In this document: positions 1-12,417 of the stretch, piece after piece
Numbering within the stretch: the first letter of the stretch is position 1
Layout: the number at the start of each line of letters is the position of its first letter
Assembly (NCBI RefSeq): GCF_052425735.1
Contig: NC_135759.1
Location: 26,412,001 to 26,476,000, forward strand
Length of the DNA: 64,000 nt
Source of the DNA: Oculina patagonica
Taxonomy: Eukaryota
Direction: 5' to 3'
Made by a program: the position numbers and the translations under genes
The notes under the pieces: model-generated
The model's database searches: none
The model's input: only the letters and a program-made list of their open reading frames with translations
What the model was told of the DNA's origin: nothing

Positions 1-3000
1 TCTCTTGGTTCTCCAAAAGCCCCTGGAAAGAACTTGAAACAGTGGGAACATCCTCTGTTGGCAGAATGGCCAAGAAATCCACAAAGTTTTCTTGCAGCAG
101 GGATGTCTGCAGCACAGCATAAAAGAGCAGCACGAGCCTCCACTGGGGTAGACGGACTATTGAAAGTGTTTACCTGAACACCTTCCCAAAGGGCTTTCAG
201 TTCATCAACTGCAGGCTCAAGAAAGTGGTTGAGACTCTTTGGTTCATGTGCAAGAGCAGGAACGATACCAACCAAAATAACATTTTCTTTCTTAAATCTA
301 ATGTTTCTTGGCAGATTCATCAAAACCATGTAAATTACACCAATGGAATAATCGCTACGATGTTTAAAAGGTTGAAACCAATCAACGTTCATCATCAGTC
401 CAAACGAACGTGGCAAGTTAAGAAATTCCTTTGTACCCTTCCAGTTGCCGAATTGTTTCCAAACCTTGCCATCGTAAACGTCTGCATACAAGTCATCATG
501 TATAGTTCTGGTTCTCCATTTCTCACACTGTTCCTCAAGTCCAGGACGTTTTAGTAAAGCCTCCAGTGAGTCAATAATGCTCTTAAAACAGTAAGTCTTC
601 AGGGCATAAAACTTTGTACTTCCATTCTTCAGAGTAACCTTCTGAGCAAGCTGTGATCCACAAACCCTAGGTCGTCTTGAGCGTGGGAATGCAACATGGT
701 TGCAAGTTCTTGCAACACTTTGACGACCGTTGTTGATCACTATGTCATCCATATGGTATAGCTTTGTGCACTTTGGACACACAACATATTTCTGAAAATT
801 ATCACAATCAATTTTGAGCAGCTTCCTAGCTGAATAAACAGTTTTTGGAACATTTGTGGCAAGAACCAAACACAAGTCTGAATGTTCCTGAATCAGCTGC
901 CCAACACACAAAAGGAACTGTTTCAAATATTTCAATAATTGCTCAACAGCATTGTCACTTATGTAGTTCTTGTATTGCCAAATCAATATAAAATACACAA
1001 GCCAAGTTAAAATGATCATGCTGCGCTGATAGTTAGTTTGATATGGAGAGGGTTCAGGTAGTTCCGAAGCCTCAGACTGTAGAACATCCTCTATGTCGCT
1101 CAGATCAGATTCCATGTAATCTGTACCCTCATCTTCATTATACTCGTTATCTTCTTCTGAACTGTGGTCAGTGTTATCATCCTCTGTAGTGAATAACACA
1201 TTTGGCTCCTAAAATAAACAATGGAGTCCAAGGTCAAAATGAATCAATATCAATAATAAATCAATAAATAAAAGCCAATTTGCAACAAGGCTACAGTGGC
1301 ACTCACACAGAGTTGCTGCTCAATTTACACAATAGTGAATAAAATAGTGCAGTGTGCTGCATTTTAAAAGGCCCAACTTAGTTAAATATTTCTAGGTCTA
1401 TTTATATTACAGAAACCTTTAGTGAAGCATTACTATAAATCCTTACAAATTGGATGGTGTACAGTAGTTCGCCATTTTTTTTAACTTGACTTAAAAAATC
1501 CTAGTCACAACCAGGTTATTTAAAATAAAACTAGTGATAAAGATACGTTAAGTAGTGCGACCATGTGTATTTTGTATAGAATTATCTTTTAAAAATGTTG
1601 TGAAATAAAAGAAACTACAGGAATGTGAATTTTAGAAATGAGTTATGTTTGATGTGAATTATTGTTTTTCAATCCGGTCAGTGTAAAATGCAGACTGCAG
1701 ACCAGGGGTAAAATACAGACCGAGGGTAAAGTAACAAAATGTGAGTCACAAAGCCATTTTTCCCTGCCAGCTAGCTGCTCCAAATTTCGAAGAAATGTAC
1801 GCCAGACAACGCTTCGTATGAGCTATCATGAAAATGAAGTGGTGATAAATGTCATACAAAATAGATAATTTGATCGAAAGCTATCAAATTAACTTTTTGA
1901 TACGTTTAAAAACCCGATTTAACTCATTTAACTGGACGGTTTAAGGATAATTTAGAAAAATAATTCTCTTTTATACCATGCCGACACAGCAAGGTCGCGT
2001 TCAGCGATCAAATTACTCCACCGCAAGAAGGAAAAATTTGGGGCAAAATTTGAGAGTTACCTGCCCTATGGGCAAGCTGGAATTCAAGTTTTTTCGAGCC
2101 CTCCAGGGGAAAAAAAATATTTGCAGCCCTGCATGTCATCATGTTTAACTGTACCTGTTGACCACCATTGTTGGATTCAGAGCCACTGCAATCATCTGTG
2201 AGATTTAAGAACAGAAAAAAGTAAGTTTTAATCACTATAGGACGCTGGCTTTATTACTTTAAAAATGGCTTAAAAGGTGTTAAAAAAAGAAAGTGTCTGG
2301 GCAAAGATCACCTTTATTCTAACAAGATACAATGTACAGTACCGCTCAAATGTAAGTTGACAGTCTCGACTTGATCCTCAAGACTCGATCCTTGCGTCCC
2401 GAAGCTCGAATCATTTGACTTTTGAGTCTCAAGAATCGAGTCTTAAGGATCGAGAAACAAGGCAACCTCAAATATTTATAACTAGAAAGGGCTTTCAAAG
2501 AAACGATTTATTACTTGAGGAGAGAATAAAAGCTGCTCAGGTATCATTTACAAGTATGTGTATCCCCCCACCACAAGTGCATGAAATATTAACCTCAACA
2601 TTTAACAGTACAATAAATTGAATCGTGCAAACCTTATTCAGTTTACTTGCCTTCAAATATTGACAAAAGGCGTCTGAGAAAGACGACGGATGACAAGTTT
2701 TAAGAATGAAATGGGTAGAAACCTTCTGCTGAGTCACCCAAATTAAAGTATGACGCACCGCTTGTGTATGTTTTCAATGATTATTTCAGACGCAAGTAAA
2801 TCTTGAGTTTCGGTAACATGAACTTCCGTAATGTAGAAGTCTCTACATGTATCTAAGTGGTCTTTGGTTTTGCTATGTGATTATTCAGCCCTCTCTTCTT
2901 GTAAAACACTTGAATGAAACAAAATAAGACATTTCATTCTAAACAGAGAGCAGAGTGTTCAAGTTAAAGTGAAGTTGTGTGACCGTGACAAAAGAGCCGG

Positions 3001-3508
3001 CTGGCCCGCATGGGTCAGGAACAATTCACCGACAAAAAAATGCCAGTCAGATTATGAACCGGCTGAACACAGTTAAAAATTGACCAATACTGCAAACCCA
3101 AACGTCCCCCTCTTACAGATATAAATAATGTTTAATGAACAATGTACCTGAATCACTCCCAGGGAGATCTGGTATACATGTAGCTGGCCCAAATGCAGTT
3201 TCACCTACAAAAAATTAATAAATACCAAAATCAATTTGCTATTATAAAAAAAAACACATGAAAAAGGGTTATTGTGCTTTCAGAATGTTTCAAGATTAAT
3301 TTTGGTGGATATAAATGTAATTCCACTAGAGTTGACTCTGCTGAACATGAATACTGTATTTACAAGTGTTGAAAACATCAAGATTAAGTATGCCTACAGT
3401 GAGAGTGATAAATGATCGTCGCAGTGAATTTCCAATTTCCATTTCAATTGACCTCGCTCCCAATGTGTGGCTTCAATAGCTCAGTTGGTAGAGCATCGCA
3501 CCGGTAAC

Positions 3509-3542
<34 letters not shown>

Positions 3543-3761
3543 TGAATTTTTTTTTCAGGCTTCTTTATTCCAATTGCTTAAATTGGAAATTCACTGCGAC
3601 GATCATTTATCACTCTCATATACATCCGCAGTTCATATATGAATCATTTCATATACATTACATCATTTCACTCCTCTCACGGGAAAATATGAACTCACAA
3701 TTGACCTCGCTCCCAATGTGTGGCTTCAATAGCTCAGTTGGTAGAGCATCGCACCGGTAAC

Positions 3762-3795
<34 letters not shown>

Positions 3796-5270
3796 TGAAT
3801 TTTTTTCAGGCTTCTTTATTCCAATTGCTTAAATTGGAAATTCACTGCGACGATCATTTATCACTCTCATATACATCCACAGTTCATATATGAATCATTT
3901 CATATACATTACATCATTATGCCTACAGTGTTGAAAATAGCAGCTGGCTGCCGGCTTTACATGTAGCTAGCACTCTGACCACACTTGCCGGCGACTTTTC
4001 ATAAAGAAATAGAAAATATCATGTTTTGACTGGCCTACTAAAATCAAAGTTGCTTTAATGTTGCAGCAAACATTTATGCTACCGACAAATAATGCAGTCA
4101 AGAAAAACTTTGAAAGCTCTGTGGATAGAAAAATAAATTGCTTATCTGTCAGACCACTGTGTTACTGTCTTGATGTTTCTGCAGGCAAGCAAGATTAATT
4201 TTTTGCCCAAAAATTATCTTGCTTATAGTTCTGGTTTAGATAAAAGCACCTTTTGCATTCATACAGTATTCTTGGACAGAACAGATTTTCCATGCTTGTA
4301 AGTGAAGAAGCATGACATGTCTGTTTAGACAAAAATGTACAGATTTCATGATTGAAATTGAAAAAAAAAAACACCTGAAAAACATGTAATTAAGATGACA
4401 AGTCTGATGCTTACACTATCTTAGCAAGTCACCGCATGCTGTATGGTGCGTTTTTTAACGGTTTTACAAGGAAGAAAGTGCTGCAAAGATTAATTTCAAG
4501 TCAAATATTTTGTTCCAAATCCCAAAATAAACGATAACTTTCGAAAACTTGTCAGATTCTTATCGAAAGCCATAGAGAAAGAGAAAGTAGTAAGTTACCG
4601 TGGTGTAGAAATTGCATAAAAACAAATTCGTATTAGAAACAATTTTTGTTGCTTCCTAAACCCTACTCTACCCCCCCCCCCACCCCCCCACCCCCCTCCA
4701 CAACAACCTACAACAGAAAACTCTTGTTCCCCGGCTACATTTTTCATTTCCCCAGCTACTTAAAAAATTAGTGACAGCCCTGGGCTGCCGGGAATCTAGG
4801 GTTTTTTTTTTTTAATAAAAACACTTCGCAAGTTCCCGGATGCTGGGTAACTAGACACAACACTAATGTTAAGTTTCTAGAAGCAAGCATAAGTAAATTC
4901 AGCTTTAGTCTTAAAAGCAAAATGACCTCAAAATTCTGCCTGCATGCTGGAGAGGACGCTTTGTGACACTTACATAACGACAAGGTGGAGGTTATCCAAG
5001 GTGTACTGTATAAATAAACATGCGAGCGATACCTGACGTACCTTCGAATTCACTTTCACTTTCACTTGAACTTGATCCAGGAACGTCAACTGGAACAGAC
5101 GATCTTTTTAAATCTTCGACTGTCTTCCAGTTATCGAGGCTTGAGTTGTAATAAAGCCTGCGATGAAGATGATACTGCGAGTGGCTGAGCAGTTGTTGGC
5201 AGTGACCACACCGCTGCCTACTCCTTTCACGCGTCTTCTTGCGATCCGACTGCATACTTTTCCTTTTCAT
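1..5270 (-). CDS. CACTA/EnSpm DDE transposase (Tnp2/Transposase_21-like), 3'-partial at window edge
   Basis: Exons 5270-5042, 3204-3148, 2195-2155 and 1208-<1, all GT-AG and phase-compatible, with no stop. N-terminal CGHC..H zinc-binding motif and acidic linker, then YVVCPKC, DVYDGKVWK, MNVDWFQPF (1st catalytic D), NLPRNIRFKKENVILVGIVP, AADIPAARKLCGFLGHSANRGCSHC (2nd D plus CxxC). The ORF track misses it because it has no stop inside the window. Confidence 0.9.
3469..3542 (+). tRNA. tRNA-Thr(GGT)-like sequence, copy 1 (probably repeat-derived pseudo-tRNA)
   Basis: Acceptor stem GGCTTCA/TGAAGCC, A-box TAGCTCAGTTGGTAGAGC, B-box GGTTCGAATCC, loop CCGGTAA, oligo-T terminator downstream. The anticodon stem is imperfect and position 33 is C rather than U. 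Confidence 0.5.
3722..3795 (+). tRNA. tRNA-Thr(GGT)-like sequence, copy 2 (identical to copy 1)
   Basis: Same cloverleaf sequence 253 bp downstream, followed by an oligo-T run. Confidence 0.5.
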
Positions 5271-5603
5271 TTTAAGGTTCTTTTCTGCTCGACAAGTAGA
5301 CTGTAGACAGTTCTTTGAGTACACCAATAAAGAAATAAATATATCCGGAAACGAAGCAAATACTGAGACGTGTGACTTTTGACTTTTGAGATGTGAAATA
5401 ACTGCGCAGTTGTTGTTGCGCATGTCGTTGAGCATGAGTCTGACCGGTCACTGACCGGTTGCCACTGACAACAAATTAGTCAGCGTCATTCGCCAGAAGG
5501 CGGGAAATTTGCAAAGAAAGTTGTCGAGGACGCACGGTACACGGTACGGAACGAAGAGCTATCAGTTGCCGACAGTTTGTTCTTTTGCGACTATTATTTT
5601 GTC

Positions 5604-8600
5604 ATGGATTCATCGAACGCGGAAAATGAAGAGATCAGAGTTTTAGATGCCGAAACTCCAAGAGCTGCACCAAGAGATATCGTCCCGGCTTCAGAGAGTG
5701 ATAGTGATCTTGTGAGAAAACTACTGGCTGAGGTTTCGAAGATTCGCGAGGAAAATCAGCAGATGAAAAAGGAGTTAGAAAATATAAAGACAAAAGAAAA
5801 AGGAAAGTCCAAGAGATCGAGAGACAACGATCCTGAGTGCTCGGTAAGCAGTTATTTTCATTCGTATTTGATTTGACTCATATTTGAATTTACCGCTTGA
5901 CGAACGAACAAAGAGTGGGAAGATTAATGGCGGTTTATCACACGTGTGACAATTGTGATTCAAGATTGATGTTCAGATAGTTTAGACCATCATCCGAGAG
6001 AAGCCACTAATACGTGCCAAAAAAATGTCGAAGCACCTGAAGAAGTACGATGTTTGTGCACTAAATGGTATTTTATTGGTGCGACCAAAACGATAAACGT
6101 CAGAGCGCGCGAGTTTATTTGTTGTCTTTGTTCAAATCAGGCGTGCGTTAAATTGGAGTGGACAGGGACTCGAAGCCACTTCGGTCCCTGTCCACTTCTG
6201 TATTTTGATTCTTCAATTTCTATCAAATAGATGAAATAGCGTGTTGTTTAACTCCCAAAATCAGCCCTTTAGGTAATATCATTTTGAAGTTTCATTGGTA
6301 AGCATTCTGCAAACAAATAGCTTGTCGGGCCCCATAGTGACTGTGCCGCCGGGCCCAAACTGGATTGGAAGGCAGGGTTTGAGAAAAGTGCGCCAGGCTA
6401 GGACTAGAAGAATGGAAAATACAGGGCAATTTAAGCTCTTAATTTAGTGTTTAAATCGTTCTCGCAATTGTGTATCCGCGGTAGTTTGAATTACTTTCCA
6501 TTATAACGGAACGAGTTCTGTTCCAGAATGAAGTTTGTTTTGCATTTATATGGCGACCGACCCAGCATTTGCTATCCCGTGCCTTTTTTCGCGCCCGATT
6601 CAAAACAAGGATGGCGCCATTCTCGTACCTCGACTCCGGTTCATTCCTTACTGCGCAAGCTTTACGAAATGTTCGAGCAACTCGAGCTCTCAAATGTTTT
6701 ATTGCAAGATCGAATTTGATCGGTTTTGAAAACGATAAAAATGGCCGGCAGAAAAACACCAGTGAGCTCGTTGAGCCATTCGTTTGAAAGCTTGGCATGC
6801 GCAAATCAACCGGTCATAAAAGGTATTTTCGGACTTCAAATTGGAACTTTCCATTAACATTTTCGACTCCAGAGCACTTCTCTTTTATGCATGACTGTCG
6901 TCGTCAGTCACGCGCATAAGTAAAGAGCTCTAGGGTCTAGCTTTTGCGCAGTAAGGAACAAAGACTCTAGATACGAAAATGAAGTGGCGCGAGTTTCGCG
7001 TTAATTACGAATGCCCTAGCCTGAATTTCAGACAGGCTACCAATGCGCCATGTCCTAAAAACACGGTTTGCGGTTTAAAAATCTCGGAAAAGAGTTCGTT
7101 TTTATTTTACATAATGAGAGAGTGAGAAGTCATACCGCCATACAAAAATGTCATCAGTTTGAAGTGAAAACCGGAATGACTGAAATTAGCTTTGTATATC
7201 TTCTATTATTCAAGTTTGTTTTTATACTGTATCCTTTTCCTTTTTTTTGTTTAAAACCATAAAATAAAGAATGCCGTCAGGAACGTCTACAAAGAACTAA
7301 AAAAGCAACAGGAACAAGAGGAGGACGGGGAAAATAGGCCAGCGTTTGATTTCAGTGTCAGGTAAACCACAAATATATTATTTGATACAGTACTGCAGTT
7401 AATTTTATACTCAAAATAAATGTGAATTAAACTCTGCGCTGTTGCGATGCACATGTACATGTATGGAAAATAACATTGTATTTTTCAAAACGTAGTCAGT
7501 TGTCGGGACTTTTAAGAAATTGTCCCAGGGCCCTAGCATGTTTTGGGACAATAAGGTAACTGTTTCTTTTCTCGCGTCGAAGTTGAATTCTTTTTTAACC
7601 AATTCTAGGCATGTGAATGTATACTTAAGTTATTCTGGACTCTTTCACGTTCCCTAGTTCAGCCCATTTGTGAGGCAGGAAGGGAGAGTTGAGGGATGTT
7701 TCATTCGATTCAACAAAACTCAACAACGGTTCTATTGACAGTCATTTCAAAGTTTCTCTCCTTTTTTCTCTATTTTTAATGTTGCCCTTTATCTCTGTTG
7801 TTCTTGTAGCTTCCACAGTTCATCAAATCAAGCCATGGCCAAGAAAATCTTAACTGAAGTGCGCGCGGTGCACGGCAAGAAAAAATGGAAGAAGTCCACC
7901 ATTAAAGGTAAGCCTTGCTCGTAAACTTTTTACAAGAGCAGCGAAACCTCCTTTGTAAGTGGTAGGAGAAATCGACCCTCTCGAGAAGGTCAAAATAAAG
8001 TCATTATTTAAGAGAAAAGGGGACTCTGTGTATGCTTACAGCCTTTTGGAAAAACTTAATCCCGAATTGTCAATCAACAGTTAGTAATTCCCGAGAAAGC
8101 TTCTGTAATAAAACCTAAATGTGTGCGTACCAAAAGTTTATTCTGTTGACATTTATTCAAGAAGGGTTTTGAGTGGCTAAAGGTTGTGTTTAAAGGATAA
8201 AAAGAGAAACATCATACATGTAACAGTTTGCTTAAAAAGTCGTTTCAATAAACCTTATCACGGTTTTCGACGCCAGCAAAGCGGAAAGAAAGTACAGTGT
8301 TTGTATGGGAATCCGACGGCAAATATCTTGTACAAAAATTGAAATCCGGACAACTCATCATGAGTTGTAAAGTTAAGATACTGGGTAAAAGATTTTATTT
8401 GCCGAGTTTGAAGGATGCAGCTGGGCTAGAAAGCATTTAGTTACGTTTTTAATTTCCCATACCCCAATTTGTCTATATTTTTCCCGGCCCGCGAACCGCG
8501 TAAATTGCGGGAAAAAAATACAGACAAATGCATGGAAACATTAAAAACGTAACTGAACTCTTTCTAGCCCAGCTACATCCTTAATTCGAACTCGGCAAAT

Positions 8601-9665
8601 AATAACTTTTGCCTAGTATCTTAACTTTACAATTCATAAGTTGTCATAAGATACATGCCGCCGGATTCCCATACAAACACTGTAATTTCTACCCGCTTTG
8701 CCTACTCGTCGAACTGAAAACTGCCAACACACTAAGTACATGCATGTGTCGAAAAATGACAAAAAGGATTTGGTCGGTAGGAAGTTTTTATTTGCAGTGA
8801 TTTCTACCAGTTCGTATAAATAAGATAGCATGTTGACTAACATATATTATGTTTTCATTTTCAACTAGCTGCTGTTCATCAACACTGGAGGTCATTAAGG
8901 GACGATGGCACGAGGAAAACCAAAAATAGCTTTGAGAAGCACCGAAAGCAAGTCAAGCGAAGTAATCGTCTAAAGAGGGTAAGTACTACGCATATACCTA
9001 TATTTTTTATCATATTTCCAGTCTGTTTGCTATTTTTTTGGTTTTAATTCGGACAATTAACAGTAAATTCATAACCATCTTCCATGAATAAAAATACGCT
9101 GCATAACACGCTCAAGTACGCTGTTGCTCAATGCTATTATATCAGTGCAGTATTTTATTTTCTTCACTAAATTTACTTCTTAGGCAGATTTTTTTTTATT
9201 TTGTAAAAAATGTTTCTGAAAGTCATGGCATCTTTAGGCACGAAAAAGACATCTTGGTAGTATATAATCTGAAATTTTTTTTGACTTATCTCCTTCGTTT
9301 GTTTCCTTCAGAAACTCTCTCGACGACTTTCTTGTTTGGAAAAGACAACTGTACTTTCAAAAGAGGACAAGAAAAAAGCACGAGAAATTCTGTCCTCTCC
9401 AGACGCCATGAGTTTTATGTCATCTGAAGAAAGCTGCGAGGAAGACGCTGTGGAACGAAGGAGTGGCCCCAAACCACGAAAGATTAGAAGCTTATCATGG
9501 GAGAAAAGTAAATTGAGGAACATTAAAGCGAAACTTGATGAAGCGCATTTTGCTGGTCTAAGTGAAAGGCAACGTCGGACAAGTGCCCGTGTCACTCGTA
9601 GTGAAGAGGAATCAGCTCGTCCTCAGCCAAGTAAAGGACCTAGTTGGGCAGTTCGCAGGGAATGA
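5604..9665 (+). CDS. Transposon accessory protein, 297 aa, C14orf93/DUF4616-like (coiled coil + basic region + MSSEES motif)
   Basis: Exons 5604-5843, 7270-7361, 7810-7907, 8869-8978 and 9312-9665 join in frame (894 nt). Motifs: HWRSLRD, KRSNRLKRKLSRR, FMSSEES, RSLSWEKSKL, SARPQP..PSWAV. Family resemblance is recalled, not searched. The exon-2 acceptor (AATAAAG) is weak. Confidence 0.72.
8395..8602. repeat. Long imperfect inverted repeat (fold-back/MITE) in accessory-gene intron
   Basis: TTATTTGCCGAGTT..GGATGCAGCTGGGCTAGAAAG..AGTTACGTTTTTAAT is mirrored by ATTAAAAACGTAACT..CTTTCTAGCCCAGCTACATCC..AACTCGGCAAATAA. Confidence 0.7.
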
Positions 9666-10039
9666 TACGAACGTTATGCACTGAGCAGTTGAAAAAGCAT
9701 GGTTATCTGACCGGTGTTGAATAATTTTCTGACATGTTACGTTCAAACGAAGAGCTAAAATCGTTTCAAATAATTACAATTATTATTATGTATCAAGGGT
9801 CGATTGTAAAACCAGAATATTGATTAAATTGAGCTGTGATGAAAATCTTACTTGTATTTGTGTGATTTTATAAAGTGGGGAATGGATTTGGCACACCGAC
9901 GGTACAAGTAAAAGTATGGCATGGGTGATAATTTTAACAGAGCAATTAAAACAAATTATTTACCAATCAAGCCCGTTATTGAGAAGGGAAGAATATGGAG
10001 TGCTAAAAAACAGTCAAAAATCAAACGTTTCCAACACGA

Positions 10040-10494
10040 AAACGCTTATTTCCGTCCAGTATTGAGCCTGATTACGTCAACGGAAACAAGAAAAAATAAC
10101 ATGTTTCCGGAACATTACCTGGTATTTCCGTCCTGTTTACGTCGACGGAAACCAGCAAATCATATTTCCGGAACGTTATCCCGTGATTCCGTCAACCTTT
10201 AAGTCTGTATACGTCGACGGAAACATGAAAAAAAGATATTTCCGGAACGTAATCGCGTGTTTCCGCAAAGGTAACCATGAGGTTCCGCTTGCGGAAACCG
10301 TTGTTTCCTTCAGCTGAAACTTGACGGAAACATGTAAAAAAGTGGTACGGTTCCGCTGTGACCGCAGCAACGGAAACACGAGTAAACGCCACGAAACCGC
10401 AGACGGAAACACGAGTTGTCCGTCATGTTTCCGCAACGGTGACACATGATTCCGCAACGTTTCCGTTTACGGAATCTTGGTATTTCGTCCTGTG
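10040..10494. repeat. CACTA subterminal repeat array and terminal inverted repeat
   Basis: More than 15 copies of CGGAAAC or (G/T)TTTCCG variants in both orientations, ending at CCTGTG. Confidence 0.85.
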
Positions 10495-10636
10495 AAAACA
10501 TACAACTATTGTAATTTTTAAAGCCTTTAAGAAGTCAGAAGTAATTGTGTGTTTTTTATAATTTGCTTAAACTGTCTATAAGAATAATCTATCTTCTTTA
10601 TTCTCATCTCTTAATTGATTATTCCACAAAATATAT

Positions 10637-11341
10637 TTACTTTTTATGTCGATATGAAAAATTTGAGCTCGAACCCCACCCTCCCCTGTAATCGTGGTCG
10701 CTTAAATTATCCGACATTGCGGGAATTTTAACAACCAATGTCCTCCTTTTAAGCCTCGAACTCGGCTTCAACTTTTCAGAATTGCAATTTCCATCACAAA
10801 TACTGCAATTTCCATATGGACCCAGTTTGCAGTTCGTTCTGTAAACAGGCGATTTCGCTCGTTTAAGATATTCCGCTTCCAGCTTCGATGCCGTGTGAAC
10901 GATTTCGTCAACTTTCAGTGCTTTTTGCCTCGTGGGTTTAAAGCTCGTAGAGTTTGCATTATCTCTCGCTATTTCTTTCAGACGTTGATCGTAGCCATCC
11001 CTTGAAGGTGGCGGTGTAAAGGAGTATCTATTTTTCAAATGTAAAGCTTCTCCGCAGATCTTATGTTGCAAAACGCAGAAGCAATCCTTCGTTACCAAGT
11101 AATCTTCCATTTCATCAACTTCAGGTGAAAGTTTTGTATCGCCAAGTCGTCGAGTTTGATGTAAGCGAGGGCTTGACTTCGGCAGTTTTCCTCTTAACTT
11201 TTCGTCGATTCCTTTCTTGAAGTTGGGTAAATCGCCAAGACTTTTGCTTAACTGTTTCATTGCGGTTTTCCGCATAACACATTCTTGGTCAGCTTCGCTT
11301 TGCTTCAAAATCTTCTTGCGTGCTGCACGAGTTCTATACAT
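10637..11341 (-). CDS. Intronless orphan ORF A (~234 aa from first ATG), basic
   Basis: Long open frame in AT-rich DNA, K/R-rich. Contains CSICDGNC and near-terminal RRTLVVKIP. No recognised domain. The frame stays open ~50 codons upstream of the ATG, so the start is uncertain. Confidence 0.6.
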   Translation of the reverse strand: MYRTRAARKKILKQSEADQECVMRKTAMKQLSKSLGDLPNFKKGIDEKLRGKLPKSSPRLHQTRRLGDTKLSPEVDEMEDYLVTKDCFCVLQHKICGEALHLKNRYSFTPPPSRDGYDQRLKEIARDNANSTSFKPTRQKALKVDEIVHTASKLEAEYLKRAKSPVYRTNCKLGPYGNCSICDGNCNSEKLKPSSRLKRRTLVVKIPAMSDNLSDHDYRGGWGSSSNFSYRHKK

Positions 11342-12417
11342 AACAGTCGTCCCGACAACGCAGCTCAAAGATTTCTTCCTTGTATAGTGAGGTGTCTGAA
11401 CGAATATTGCATCAATAACTTGGATTAATTGCAGCTGCCACGATCTTAAATGTAGATAGAATATTATACTGAATATTAAACTAGTGCTTTCCTTTTTTCA
11501 GCCAAGACCTGGTGGCGACGATATAATGTTTTCTATCCAAACGCATTGTTTTTCATCAGTGGTGTTTTGATAAATCTTTCTGTTATCGTGCTGTTTCGAT
11601 CTCACTCGAAGCCGAATTTGTATAATAATTATCTGCAGCAAATTACAAAATCTAAACTTCAAGGAAATTTGCATTGGGTAAACATGACGGCTCAAAATGA
11701 GACATGTTCTTCAAAGGCGGCAATAATTTGAATCTAAAAAAAAGAAATTAGATCGAATATGTAAACAAATCGACTCTAGAGGCTCCATGTCAATTAAGTG
11801 GGAGTCTTTTAACAGTGGCATATTGCAATACGAACAAAAGGCAAGTACATGTGTCTATCTGCATAACAAAGCAGATTTCCTGGCTTAATTCTCTAAAAGA
11901 CGCGAGACGAATCTGTACTAAAAATAATAGAAACCACGTCGCGTTAATTACGTACATTAATTGCGGTTAATTTTCTCTTCAGTAAACATTGCGGCTTCGC
12001 TAATCAGATAAGGAGATTAAGGTCGACAAAAATCTTCGTTTAAATTGCAATCAAGGCAAACTTGTACAAATGGTCGAGTGTCTGAGATCAAAATCCAGGC
12101 GGTTGAAGATTTGTGTGGATTAATGTCAGCGATGTGTTTACAATCAATGTACACAACTAAACACAATAGGAGGCATTTGAACTGCTGACTATTTTTAAAT
12201 TGGCCTGTGAAAAACACGCCGTCTTGCTTCGAGCTCCTTTATATACAGACGCGCGAGTGAAACGCTGTTTTCCTCCCACTGAACGAAAAACTTTGTATTC
12301 ACAGACATATATATAAATACATAGCTCCTATGTAATGCAAAATAAAAATAAACCCCGCATAACAACGTACAGCAATCAGTTCCTGTCAGATATATCATAG
12401 TGGATCTCTGAAATTCA

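Follow-up and report, generated by a model that had tools for sequence, protein, structure and literature searches.

The locus described here raises the question of what a second gene, lying head-to-head with a transposase gene, does inside an animal CACTA element. It comes from the coral Oculina patagonica (529-Mb assembly), where we analysed a window of 64,000 nucleotides (G000:C2:26412001-26476000; positions given without a contig are those of the window) and also read the neighbouring DNA to its left. Our answer is that the stretch holds the right two thirds of a full-length, apparently autonomous CACTA/CMC DNA transposon that carries, beside its transposase, a separate and divergently oriented partner gene, and that the product of this accessory gene would serve the element as a cofactor.

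The element spans 14,968 bp (G000:C2:26407527-26422494), and window positions 1-10494 are its right two thirds, cut by the left window edge. Both termini carry the 13-bp inverted repeat CACAGGACGAAAT, identical at 13 of 13 positions. The left copy begins at G000:C2:26407527, 4.5 kb to the left of the window, where it is preceded by ...GACAAA. The right copy, its reverse complement, lies on the minus strand at 10482-10494, where the element ends in ...ATTTCGTCCTGTG, and the boundary at 10494 reads ...GGTATTTCGTCCTGTG followed directly by AAAACA. AAA therefore flanks the element on both sides as a 3-bp target-site duplication, with the right copy at 10495-10497 and the left copy formed by the three bases that precede the left terminus. 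Next to the termini lie arrays of CGGAAAC/GTTTCCG, with 10 sites at the left end and 11 at the right, all within ~300-450 bp of the ends, and the longer core of this motif, ACGGAAAC, occurs in both orientations at both ends. The right subterminal region occupies 10020-10481, and 11 of the 14 sites in the 64-kb window fall in 10,000-10,494, the last 495 bp of the element. A preliminary description of the window had placed both genes within a CACAG end with subterminal repeats and expected a matching left terminus with its duplication; the coordinates confirm the former, since both genes lie inside the terminal repeats, and the latter exists, complete with its own array.

Two further elements in the genome share these termini and subterminal arrays, one on contig C8 (20,127 bp, target-site duplication TTA/TTA) and one on C2 that represents a second family (family 2; 18,532 bp). 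The head-to-head gene pair lies inside the termini in every full copy (n=3). With a Transposase_21 enzyme, termini of the form CAC(T/A)(A/G), a 2-3 bp duplication and subterminal arrays in two orientations, the locus shows all the features by which CACTA/CMC (EnSpm) elements are recognised.

The transposase gene is encoded on the minus strand and is modelled as four coding exons, with GT..AG at all borders and a product of 999 aa. The coding part of exon 1 (5042-5270, donor GTACGT at 5041) is an open reading frame overlapped by an RNA contig from sequencing run X3 (5055-5572), and encodes a basic stretch, a CxxC...HxH motif and an acidic Ser/Glu run; alternative in-frame ATGs lie upstream of the start at 5270, up to 5435. 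Exon 2 (57 nt, 3148-3204, minus strand) comes from splice enumeration and is linked to exon 1 by an X3 RNA contig with a loose end at 5055. Exon 3 (41 nt, 2155-2195, minus strand) uses a GT..AG pair that keeps the frame open into exon 4, its borders having been chosen by eye among several frame-keeping GT..AG combinations; the junction seen in RNA is that between exons 1 and 2. Exon 4 is an unbroken frame of 890 codons (G000:C2:26410539-26413208), the first 402 of which lie in the window (1-1208, minus strand) before the frame continues to the left. Pfam Transposase_21 (PF02992) matches the window part at E 3e-18 and the whole exon at E 1.2e-17 (64 bits, cut-off 28.6). The DDE triad, in exon-4 numbering D276 (NVDWFQPF), D368 (AADIPA) and E624 (FSFERxNG), is invariant across 38 sequences (37 homologues and this one), with the two aspartates inside the window and E624 to the left of it. 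Among 8,000 candidates scored we find 937 homologues at E<=1e-20, many from marine invertebrates, and those at 40-46% identity come from amphioxus, acorn worm, oyster, abalone, Lingula and an octocoral.

The partner gene lies on the plus strand, and enumeration of its splice sites yields one product of exactly 297 aa from five exons with canonical GT..AG borders. Exon 1 (5604-5843, 80 codons) encodes an acidic N-terminus and a predicted coiled coil, is conserved in family 2, and is joined in RNA contigs (junction 5843 to 7270) to exon 2 (7270-7361, 92 nt). The folded unit begins in exon 3 (7810-7907, 98 nt), while exon 4 (8869-8978, 110 nt) carries a WRSLRDD motif and a long basic helix, both placements drawing on the structure model of a close homologue, P0001. 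RNA contigs and family 2 support exons 2 to 4 alike. Exon 5 (9312-9665, including the stop) encodes a 117-aa alpha/beta domain, C14orf93-like by its predicted structure, homologues and fold matches, with the motifs MSSEES, WEKS..L...K..LD and S.RP.P...P.WA. A 3' untranslated region (9666-9845) follows and runs to the poly(A) site, marked by a loose end after 9845 in an X3 contig. Between the start codons at 5270 and 5604 lies a 333-bp spacer (5271-5603), a presumed bidirectional promoter that RNA contigs enter from both sides.

Expression data agree with this model. The X3 contigs contain all four accessory junctions at the predicted GT..AG positions, together with the poly(A) tail, and X3 word depth is ~300-1450 over accessory exons against ~5-10 over introns. 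Partner mRNA stands far above transposase mRNA in this run (~1000 vs ~42). These are assembled contigs, from which strand and transcription starts are unreadable; two metatranscriptome runs cover exons and introns evenly and are uninformative. The partner is thus no alternative-splice product of the transposase unit but a gene in its own right, read from the other strand and having a start, introns and a poly(A) site of its own. That two unbroken multi-exon genes diverge from a 333-bp spacer inside one CACTA element had been proposed from the window alone. Both genes are where they were said to be, the termini enclose them, and the RNA contigs reproduce four accessory junctions and one of the transposase.

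Within the Oculina genome, tblastn finds 22 matches to accessory exon 5, eight of them open over the full length, and 52 matches to the transposase. The accessory gene is multi-copy, and it adjoins a transposase in the other full copies as well. Between the window element and family 2, DNA similarity is limited to the five accessory exons; the family 2 accessory gene likewise has five exons, with inner sizes (92/98/110 nt) and phases identical to those of the window copy. The accessory proteins of the two families are 62% identical, with a ratio of nonsynonymous to synonymous divergence (dN/dS) of 0.11 and a synonymous divergence (pS) of 0.715, and the transposases are 78% identical, with dN/dS 0.07 and pS 0.70. 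The matching pS values mean that the genes have been inherited as a pair from the time the families diverged, and both are constrained; by this comparison of coding sequences, strong purifying selection has acted on both over that period.

The C8 element (G000:C8:21451605-21471731) is 94% identical to the window copy near the accessory end, dropping to ~78% at the DNA level, and its transposase shows 76% protein identity and a TAG stop while its accessory exon 5 is 97% identical. This unevenness may reflect recombination between element families. Four copies with shared internal transposase deletions keep an open accessory exon 5. The derivative, present in at least four copies (G000:C2:20450008/20458205, C3:28461045/28469320, C4:655665/648184 and C12:7787756/7797397), retains transposase residues ~4-90 and ~319-411 only, and is a non-autonomous element that may still produce the partner protein.

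The same pair recurs in other phyla. Searching 1.84 billion proteins with an exon-5 domain profile returns 238 representative homologues at E<=1e-3, mostly single-exon fragments; two of them (P0099 and P0124) are short transcript contigs without genomic context. In the sea cucumber Apostichopus, a 314-aa protein with this domain is encoded head-to-head with a 1047-aa Transposase_21 gene whose product is 43% identical to the Oculina transposase. The reverse approach, from transposase homologues, covered two elements, and in each the gene upstream is divergent and ends in an exon that matches the hidden Markov model (HMM) of the domain: Branchiostoma floridae (amphioxus), with a partner of 289 aa (E 8e-20), and Ptychodera flava (acorn worm), with one of 362 aa (E 3e-26). 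A subterminal array is present in the amphioxus element too, and its GTTCCGT/TTTCCGT core resembles the coral motif. Judged from these sequences, the two genes have been kept together from cnidarians to cephalochordates. The expectation that homologues of the accessory gene would always neighbour a Transposase_21 gene holds for Apostichopus, Branchiostoma and Ptychodera and fails for Lingula and Macrostomum, whose relatives have no transposase within 10 kb and sit among ordinary host neighbours. Macrostomum lignano has several such genes (loci L047 and L056), of 397-564 aa, in which the domain is C-terminal behind long low-complexity regions, and these look like domesticated paralogues.

Capture of host gene fragments is a known habit of CACTA elements, and the partner could be cargo of this kind, without a role in transposition and owing its C14orf93 likeness to a picked-up piece of a host gene of the C14orf93 type; the transposase-free relatives in Lingula and Macrostomum would fit such an origin. 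We think this very unlikely, because four phyla retain the two genes head-to-head although their transposases are only 42-44% identical to that of Oculina, because between the element families both genes have diverged equally at synonymous sites under strong purifying selection, and because we see a whole gene with splicing and polyadenylation, where capture would leave a fragment. That the partner is an element-encoded cofactor of some kind is, in our judgement, highly probable.

Several observations weigh against this reading. The family 2 element is flanked by CGT and TCG, and so has no clean target-site duplication. No near-identical second copy of the window element was seen in the genome (the next is 88-94% identical), so copy identity gives no proof of recent movement. 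The X3 contigs differ by a few percent from the window and derive from a near-identical copy, not provably the window locus, and the run is labelled with another organism code. Lastly, an Oculina CACTA family with a 46%-identical transposase has no such gene within 10 kb upstream, where neither domain HMM gives a match; the partner is therefore not universal among CACTA elements and marks one clade of them.

What, then, is the partner protein? AlphaFold2 (AF2), given 56 sequences, models exon 5 as a helical plus three-stranded unit, with a predicted local distance difference test (pLDDT) value of 92 and a predicted template-modelling score (pTM) of 0.82. P0001 (178 aa), which covers exons 3-5, is modelled at pLDDT 91 with three extra helices, one of them long and basic. 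Exons 3-5 are thus confidently predicted to form one helical plus alpha/beta unit of ~175 residues. An earlier idea that MSSEES is a disordered CK2-type phospho-motif was rejected, as the motif forms a beta strand inside the domain in the AF2 model. Searches of the PDB with both models, by Foldseek and an exhaustive aligner, returned no relatives (template-modelling score, TM, <=0.34; Z <=4.0 and <=5.3), and weak recurrent FAN1 rows in these searches were judged to be noise.

The preliminary description had likened the partner to vertebrate C14orf93 and its Pfam family DUF4616 (PF15394). At the level of Pfam this does not stand: PF15394 matches no exon of the window protein at E<=1, none of ten long relatives, and none of 56 relatives at E<=10, and Pfam scans of the partner exons and their relatives find no other meaningful family. 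By its sequence, the window protein is not a DUF4616 member under the Pfam criterion. Scanning the whole genome with PF15394 (gathering score 27 bits) gives three places, none in the window, one of which reaches 28.4 bits, above the cut-off. These loci define a coral group, here group D, in which seven of nine members have PF15394 as their top Pfam match, the sole match in four of the seven; all seven matches fall at model positions 394-476 with E 2e-5 to 0.03, below the cut-off. Group D adjoins decayed CACTA transposase remnants at two of the three loci examined. One decayed CACTA element on C6 (G000:C6:1284001-1304000, loci L040 and L039) has a transposase 39-45% identical to that of the window, a divergent partner with a DUF4616-like last exon (24 bits), and a retrotransposon-like 1318-aa frame between the two genes.

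At a remote level the likeness is supported, for the C-terminal ~115-175 residues only. Aligning 36 accessory domains against group D with hhalign gives a probability of 84% and E 7e-6 over 86 collinear columns, which span an acidic Y-[MV]-S-[SD]-E-E strand, a W-[ER]-S helix and an S.R..P...WA tail; group D is here an intermediate, not C14orf93 itself. A language-model search with P0001 finds that the nearest named Atlas clusters (score 0.94) carry PF15394 in 12-17% of members, and the same search with exon 5 alone gave no usable match. In fold comparisons, which use predicted models on both sides, the only one of 550,129 Swiss-Prot models above TM 0.35 is mouse C14orf93 (Q8K2W9), whose residues 402-494 align with residues 2-114 of the 117 of the query at TM 0.61 and a root-mean-square deviation of 3.6 A; the next best reaches 0.34. 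The AlphaFold cluster representatives yield 30 matches, all at probability 1.00 but for one at 0.99. Their sources are cnidarians, molluscs, Macrostomum, Lingula, Glomeromycota-type fungi and Basidiomycota, and among them is an 'Uncharacterized protein C14orf93-like' (A0A6P4ZLY1; probability 1.00, E 5e-3, TM 0.63). A shape search of the Atlas gives TM 0.77 for a PF15394-bearing cluster and 0.58-0.67 for clusters of the fungal family DUF8263, before falling sharply to <=0.39 for unrelated proteins. The predicted fold of the exon-5 domain therefore matches that of the C14orf93 C-terminal domain.

A small alpha/beta unit made of an acidic strand and an amphipathic helix could also arrive at such a likeness by chance or convergence, in which case the partner would be an unrelated, fast-evolving transposon protein. 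The failure of PF15394 on the window protein and its 56 relatives points that way, as do the Foldseek statistics for mouse C14orf93 (E 3.9, probability 0.38), an hhalign probability of just 84% that is reached only to an intermediate group itself below the Pfam cut-off in seven of seven matches, and the predicted nature of both structures; all of these count against the kinship. We nevertheless hold convergence to be unlikely, given that C14orf93 is the sole Swiss-Prot entry above TM 0.35 and is matched over nearly the whole query, and that its matched region is exactly the one that the Pfam model aligns to group D. The match to the 'C14orf93-like' cluster representative, the PF15394 content of the Atlas clusters nearest by shape and by language-model features, the one coral copy above the Pfam cut-off and the collinear alignment of three sequence motifs add to this. 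Homology between the partner's C-terminal unit and the C-terminal domain of C14orf93 is thus likely, and the models place this unit in one fold family with the C14orf93 domain (DUF4616 ~390-480) and the fungal DUF8263 proteins.

Both sets of proteins also differ from the partner. Vertebrate C14orf93 (also RTFC or 4931414P19Rik) shares with the last exon of the partner its predicted C-terminal fold (mouse 402-494, TM 0.61-0.63) and, seen via the coral intermediate group, the order of acidic strand, W-[ER]-S helix and S.R..P...WA tail. However, it is a host gene present in single copy and encoding ~540 aa, nothing in the partner was seen to match the first ~390 residues, and its Pfam model misses the window protein. 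The DUF8263 proteins (PF26792), from Basidiomycota and unnamed Mucoromycota clusters, share the predicted fold over 85-162 residues (TM 0.58-0.71) and are among the top language-model matches, a likeness at the level of fold and features.

The human gene C14orf93/RTFC is linked to familial thyroid cancer and cortical development. For mouse Rtfc, function was described as elusive and no structural domain was identified (PMC5322522). The only folded domain of this gene would correspond to the transposon partner module, and C14orf93 could then be a domesticated accessory gene of an ancient CACTA clade, an origin that we put forward as a possibility that falls short of probable. The searchable literature holds nothing that ties C14orf93, DUF4616 or DUF8263 to transposons. 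On that reading, the module would be one that these transposons use beside the transposase from cnidarians to amphioxus, probably in fungi also, and possibly for reading subterminal repeats.

How might such a module act? In maize En/Spm, the accessory protein TnpA binds the subterminal repeats while the transposase TnpD acts at the ends (PMC1636069). The Oculina element resembles En/Spm in its Transposase_21 DDE enzyme, its CAC-starting termini, its 3-bp duplication and its subterminal motifs in two orientations, as well as in having a second protein that lacks a transposase domain and whose mRNA exceeds that of the transposase. It differs in that TnpA and TnpD come from one co-oriented unit by alternative splicing whereas Oculina has two genes divided by the 333-bp spacer, and in that its terminus is CACAG and not CACTA; repeat binding, established for TnpA, would be a predicted property of the Oculina partner. 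No sequence or Pfam similarity links the partner to plant TnpA, and neither its exons nor their relatives match any plant CACTA accessory family.

By analogy, we propose that the partner is a required transposition cofactor in the role of TnpA. The N-terminal coiled coil would allow the protein to multimerise, while its very basic helix and C-terminal domain would contact the ACGGAAAC repeats next to the termini, so that the element ends are brought together for the transposase; the transposase-free copies, and C14orf93 itself, would be domesticated descendants. An isoelectric point of 9.96, the long basic helix and the coiled-coil-like N-terminal exon, as predicted, fit the TnpA analogy, and make recognition of the ACGGAAAC arrays the most likely role. 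As a specific mechanism, however, recognition and pairing of these arrays by the partner is a tentative proposal, to which we give a little under an even chance.

The partner may instead be a cofactor that does not bind the repeats, such as a regulator or repressor, a nuclear-import or chromatin adaptor, or a chaperone of the transposase, with the CxxC...HxH region at the transposase N-terminus reading the ACGGAAAC repeats in its place; we treat this as a serious contender, though one that we would not bet on. The PDB searches of both models returned no DNA-binding fold, which is also a point against the TnpA-like role, and C14orf93 is reportedly nuclear and was recovered in RNA-binding and phosphopeptide-binding screens without validation (PMC5322522). 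The excess of partner over transposase mRNA in X3 would be compatible with a regulator, and transposase-deleted copies retain the partner gene. Against this reading stand the very basic character of the protein and its long basic helix, and in maize it is the accessory protein and not the transposase that binds subterminal repeats (PMC1636069). A similar repeat core and the same partner domain also occur together in both coral and amphioxus. A predicted complex of transposase exon-4 residues 1-880 with the exon-5 domain, made without alignments, gave pLDDT 32-34 for the partner and is evidence neither way.

Animal CACTA elements are already known, as are accessory proteins in CACTA elements. 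SmTRC1 and other animal and fungal CACTA (TRC) elements were described by DeMarco et al. 2006 (PMC1636069), and the Oculina element resembles the SmTRC1 type as an animal CACTA with Transposase_21 and with short non-transposase products expressed above the transposase. In SmTRC1, however, the extra proteins are co-oriented products of alternative splicing, for which the authors found no similar protein in other animal or fungal elements (PMC1636069), whereas the Oculina partner lies on the opposite strand and belongs to a family conserved from coral to amphioxus; the duplications of SmTRC1-type elements are of 2 bp and that of Oculina is of 3 bp. The non-transposase proteins of animal CACTA elements have been described as lineage-specific and unalignable (PMC1636069), and the searchable literature on animal CACTA accessory genes contains no account of such a partner gene. 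Relative to that literature, with Repbase entries outside it, what appears new is an oppositely oriented partner that, from sequence comparison, is conserved with its transposase clade across phyla. New also are a confidently predicted domain without a solved relative, and its putative kinship with C14orf93/DUF4616 and DUF8263.

A partner that travels with one transposase clade in at least four animal phyla is a concrete candidate for the second factor of animal CACTA transposition, and the conserved pair offers a tractable test system. Its predicted fold also links three sets of proteins of unknown function, namely DUF4616 with human C14orf93/RTFC, fungal DUF8263, and many unnamed invertebrate proteins. 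If the kinship is true, it gives C14orf93 an origin that can be tested and a first hypothesis about its function, and, given the transposase-free copies in a flatworm and a brachiopod, would add a case of repeated accessory-gene domestication. If domestication did occur, the function of C14orf93 would be directed at nucleic acids or chromatin and inherited from a transposon.

The element and its surroundings carry several other features. Just beyond the right end lies a 243-aa intronless open frame (10637-11368, minus strand) that matches no Pfam family significantly, its one row, Nop53, falling below threshold (E 0.0027). In the left arm, outside the window, a ~2 kb minisatellite (G000:C2:26407930-26409850) separates the transposase stop from the left subterminal repeats, and translates into PTGSND/QMTQ repeats in several frames. 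Accessory intron 3 contains a foldback, MITE-like insertion (8276-8701) whose inverted arms are nested, measure 54, 53 and 43 nt and are 89-91% complementary; in sequencing runs its word depth is high and 'opposite strands' joints occur. Transposase intron 3 holds a ~500-bp dispersed repeat (1526-2026) with many genomic copies at 95-98% identity. Finally, a ~251-bp tandem repeat occurs as two units in transposase intron 1 (3445-3918), each with a tRNA-Thr(GGT)-like gene (3469-3542 and 3722-3795). Long arrays of this unit, 97-100% identical, are found at other genomic sites, among them C12:10.63 Mb, C9:4.93 Mb and C6:32.26 Mb.

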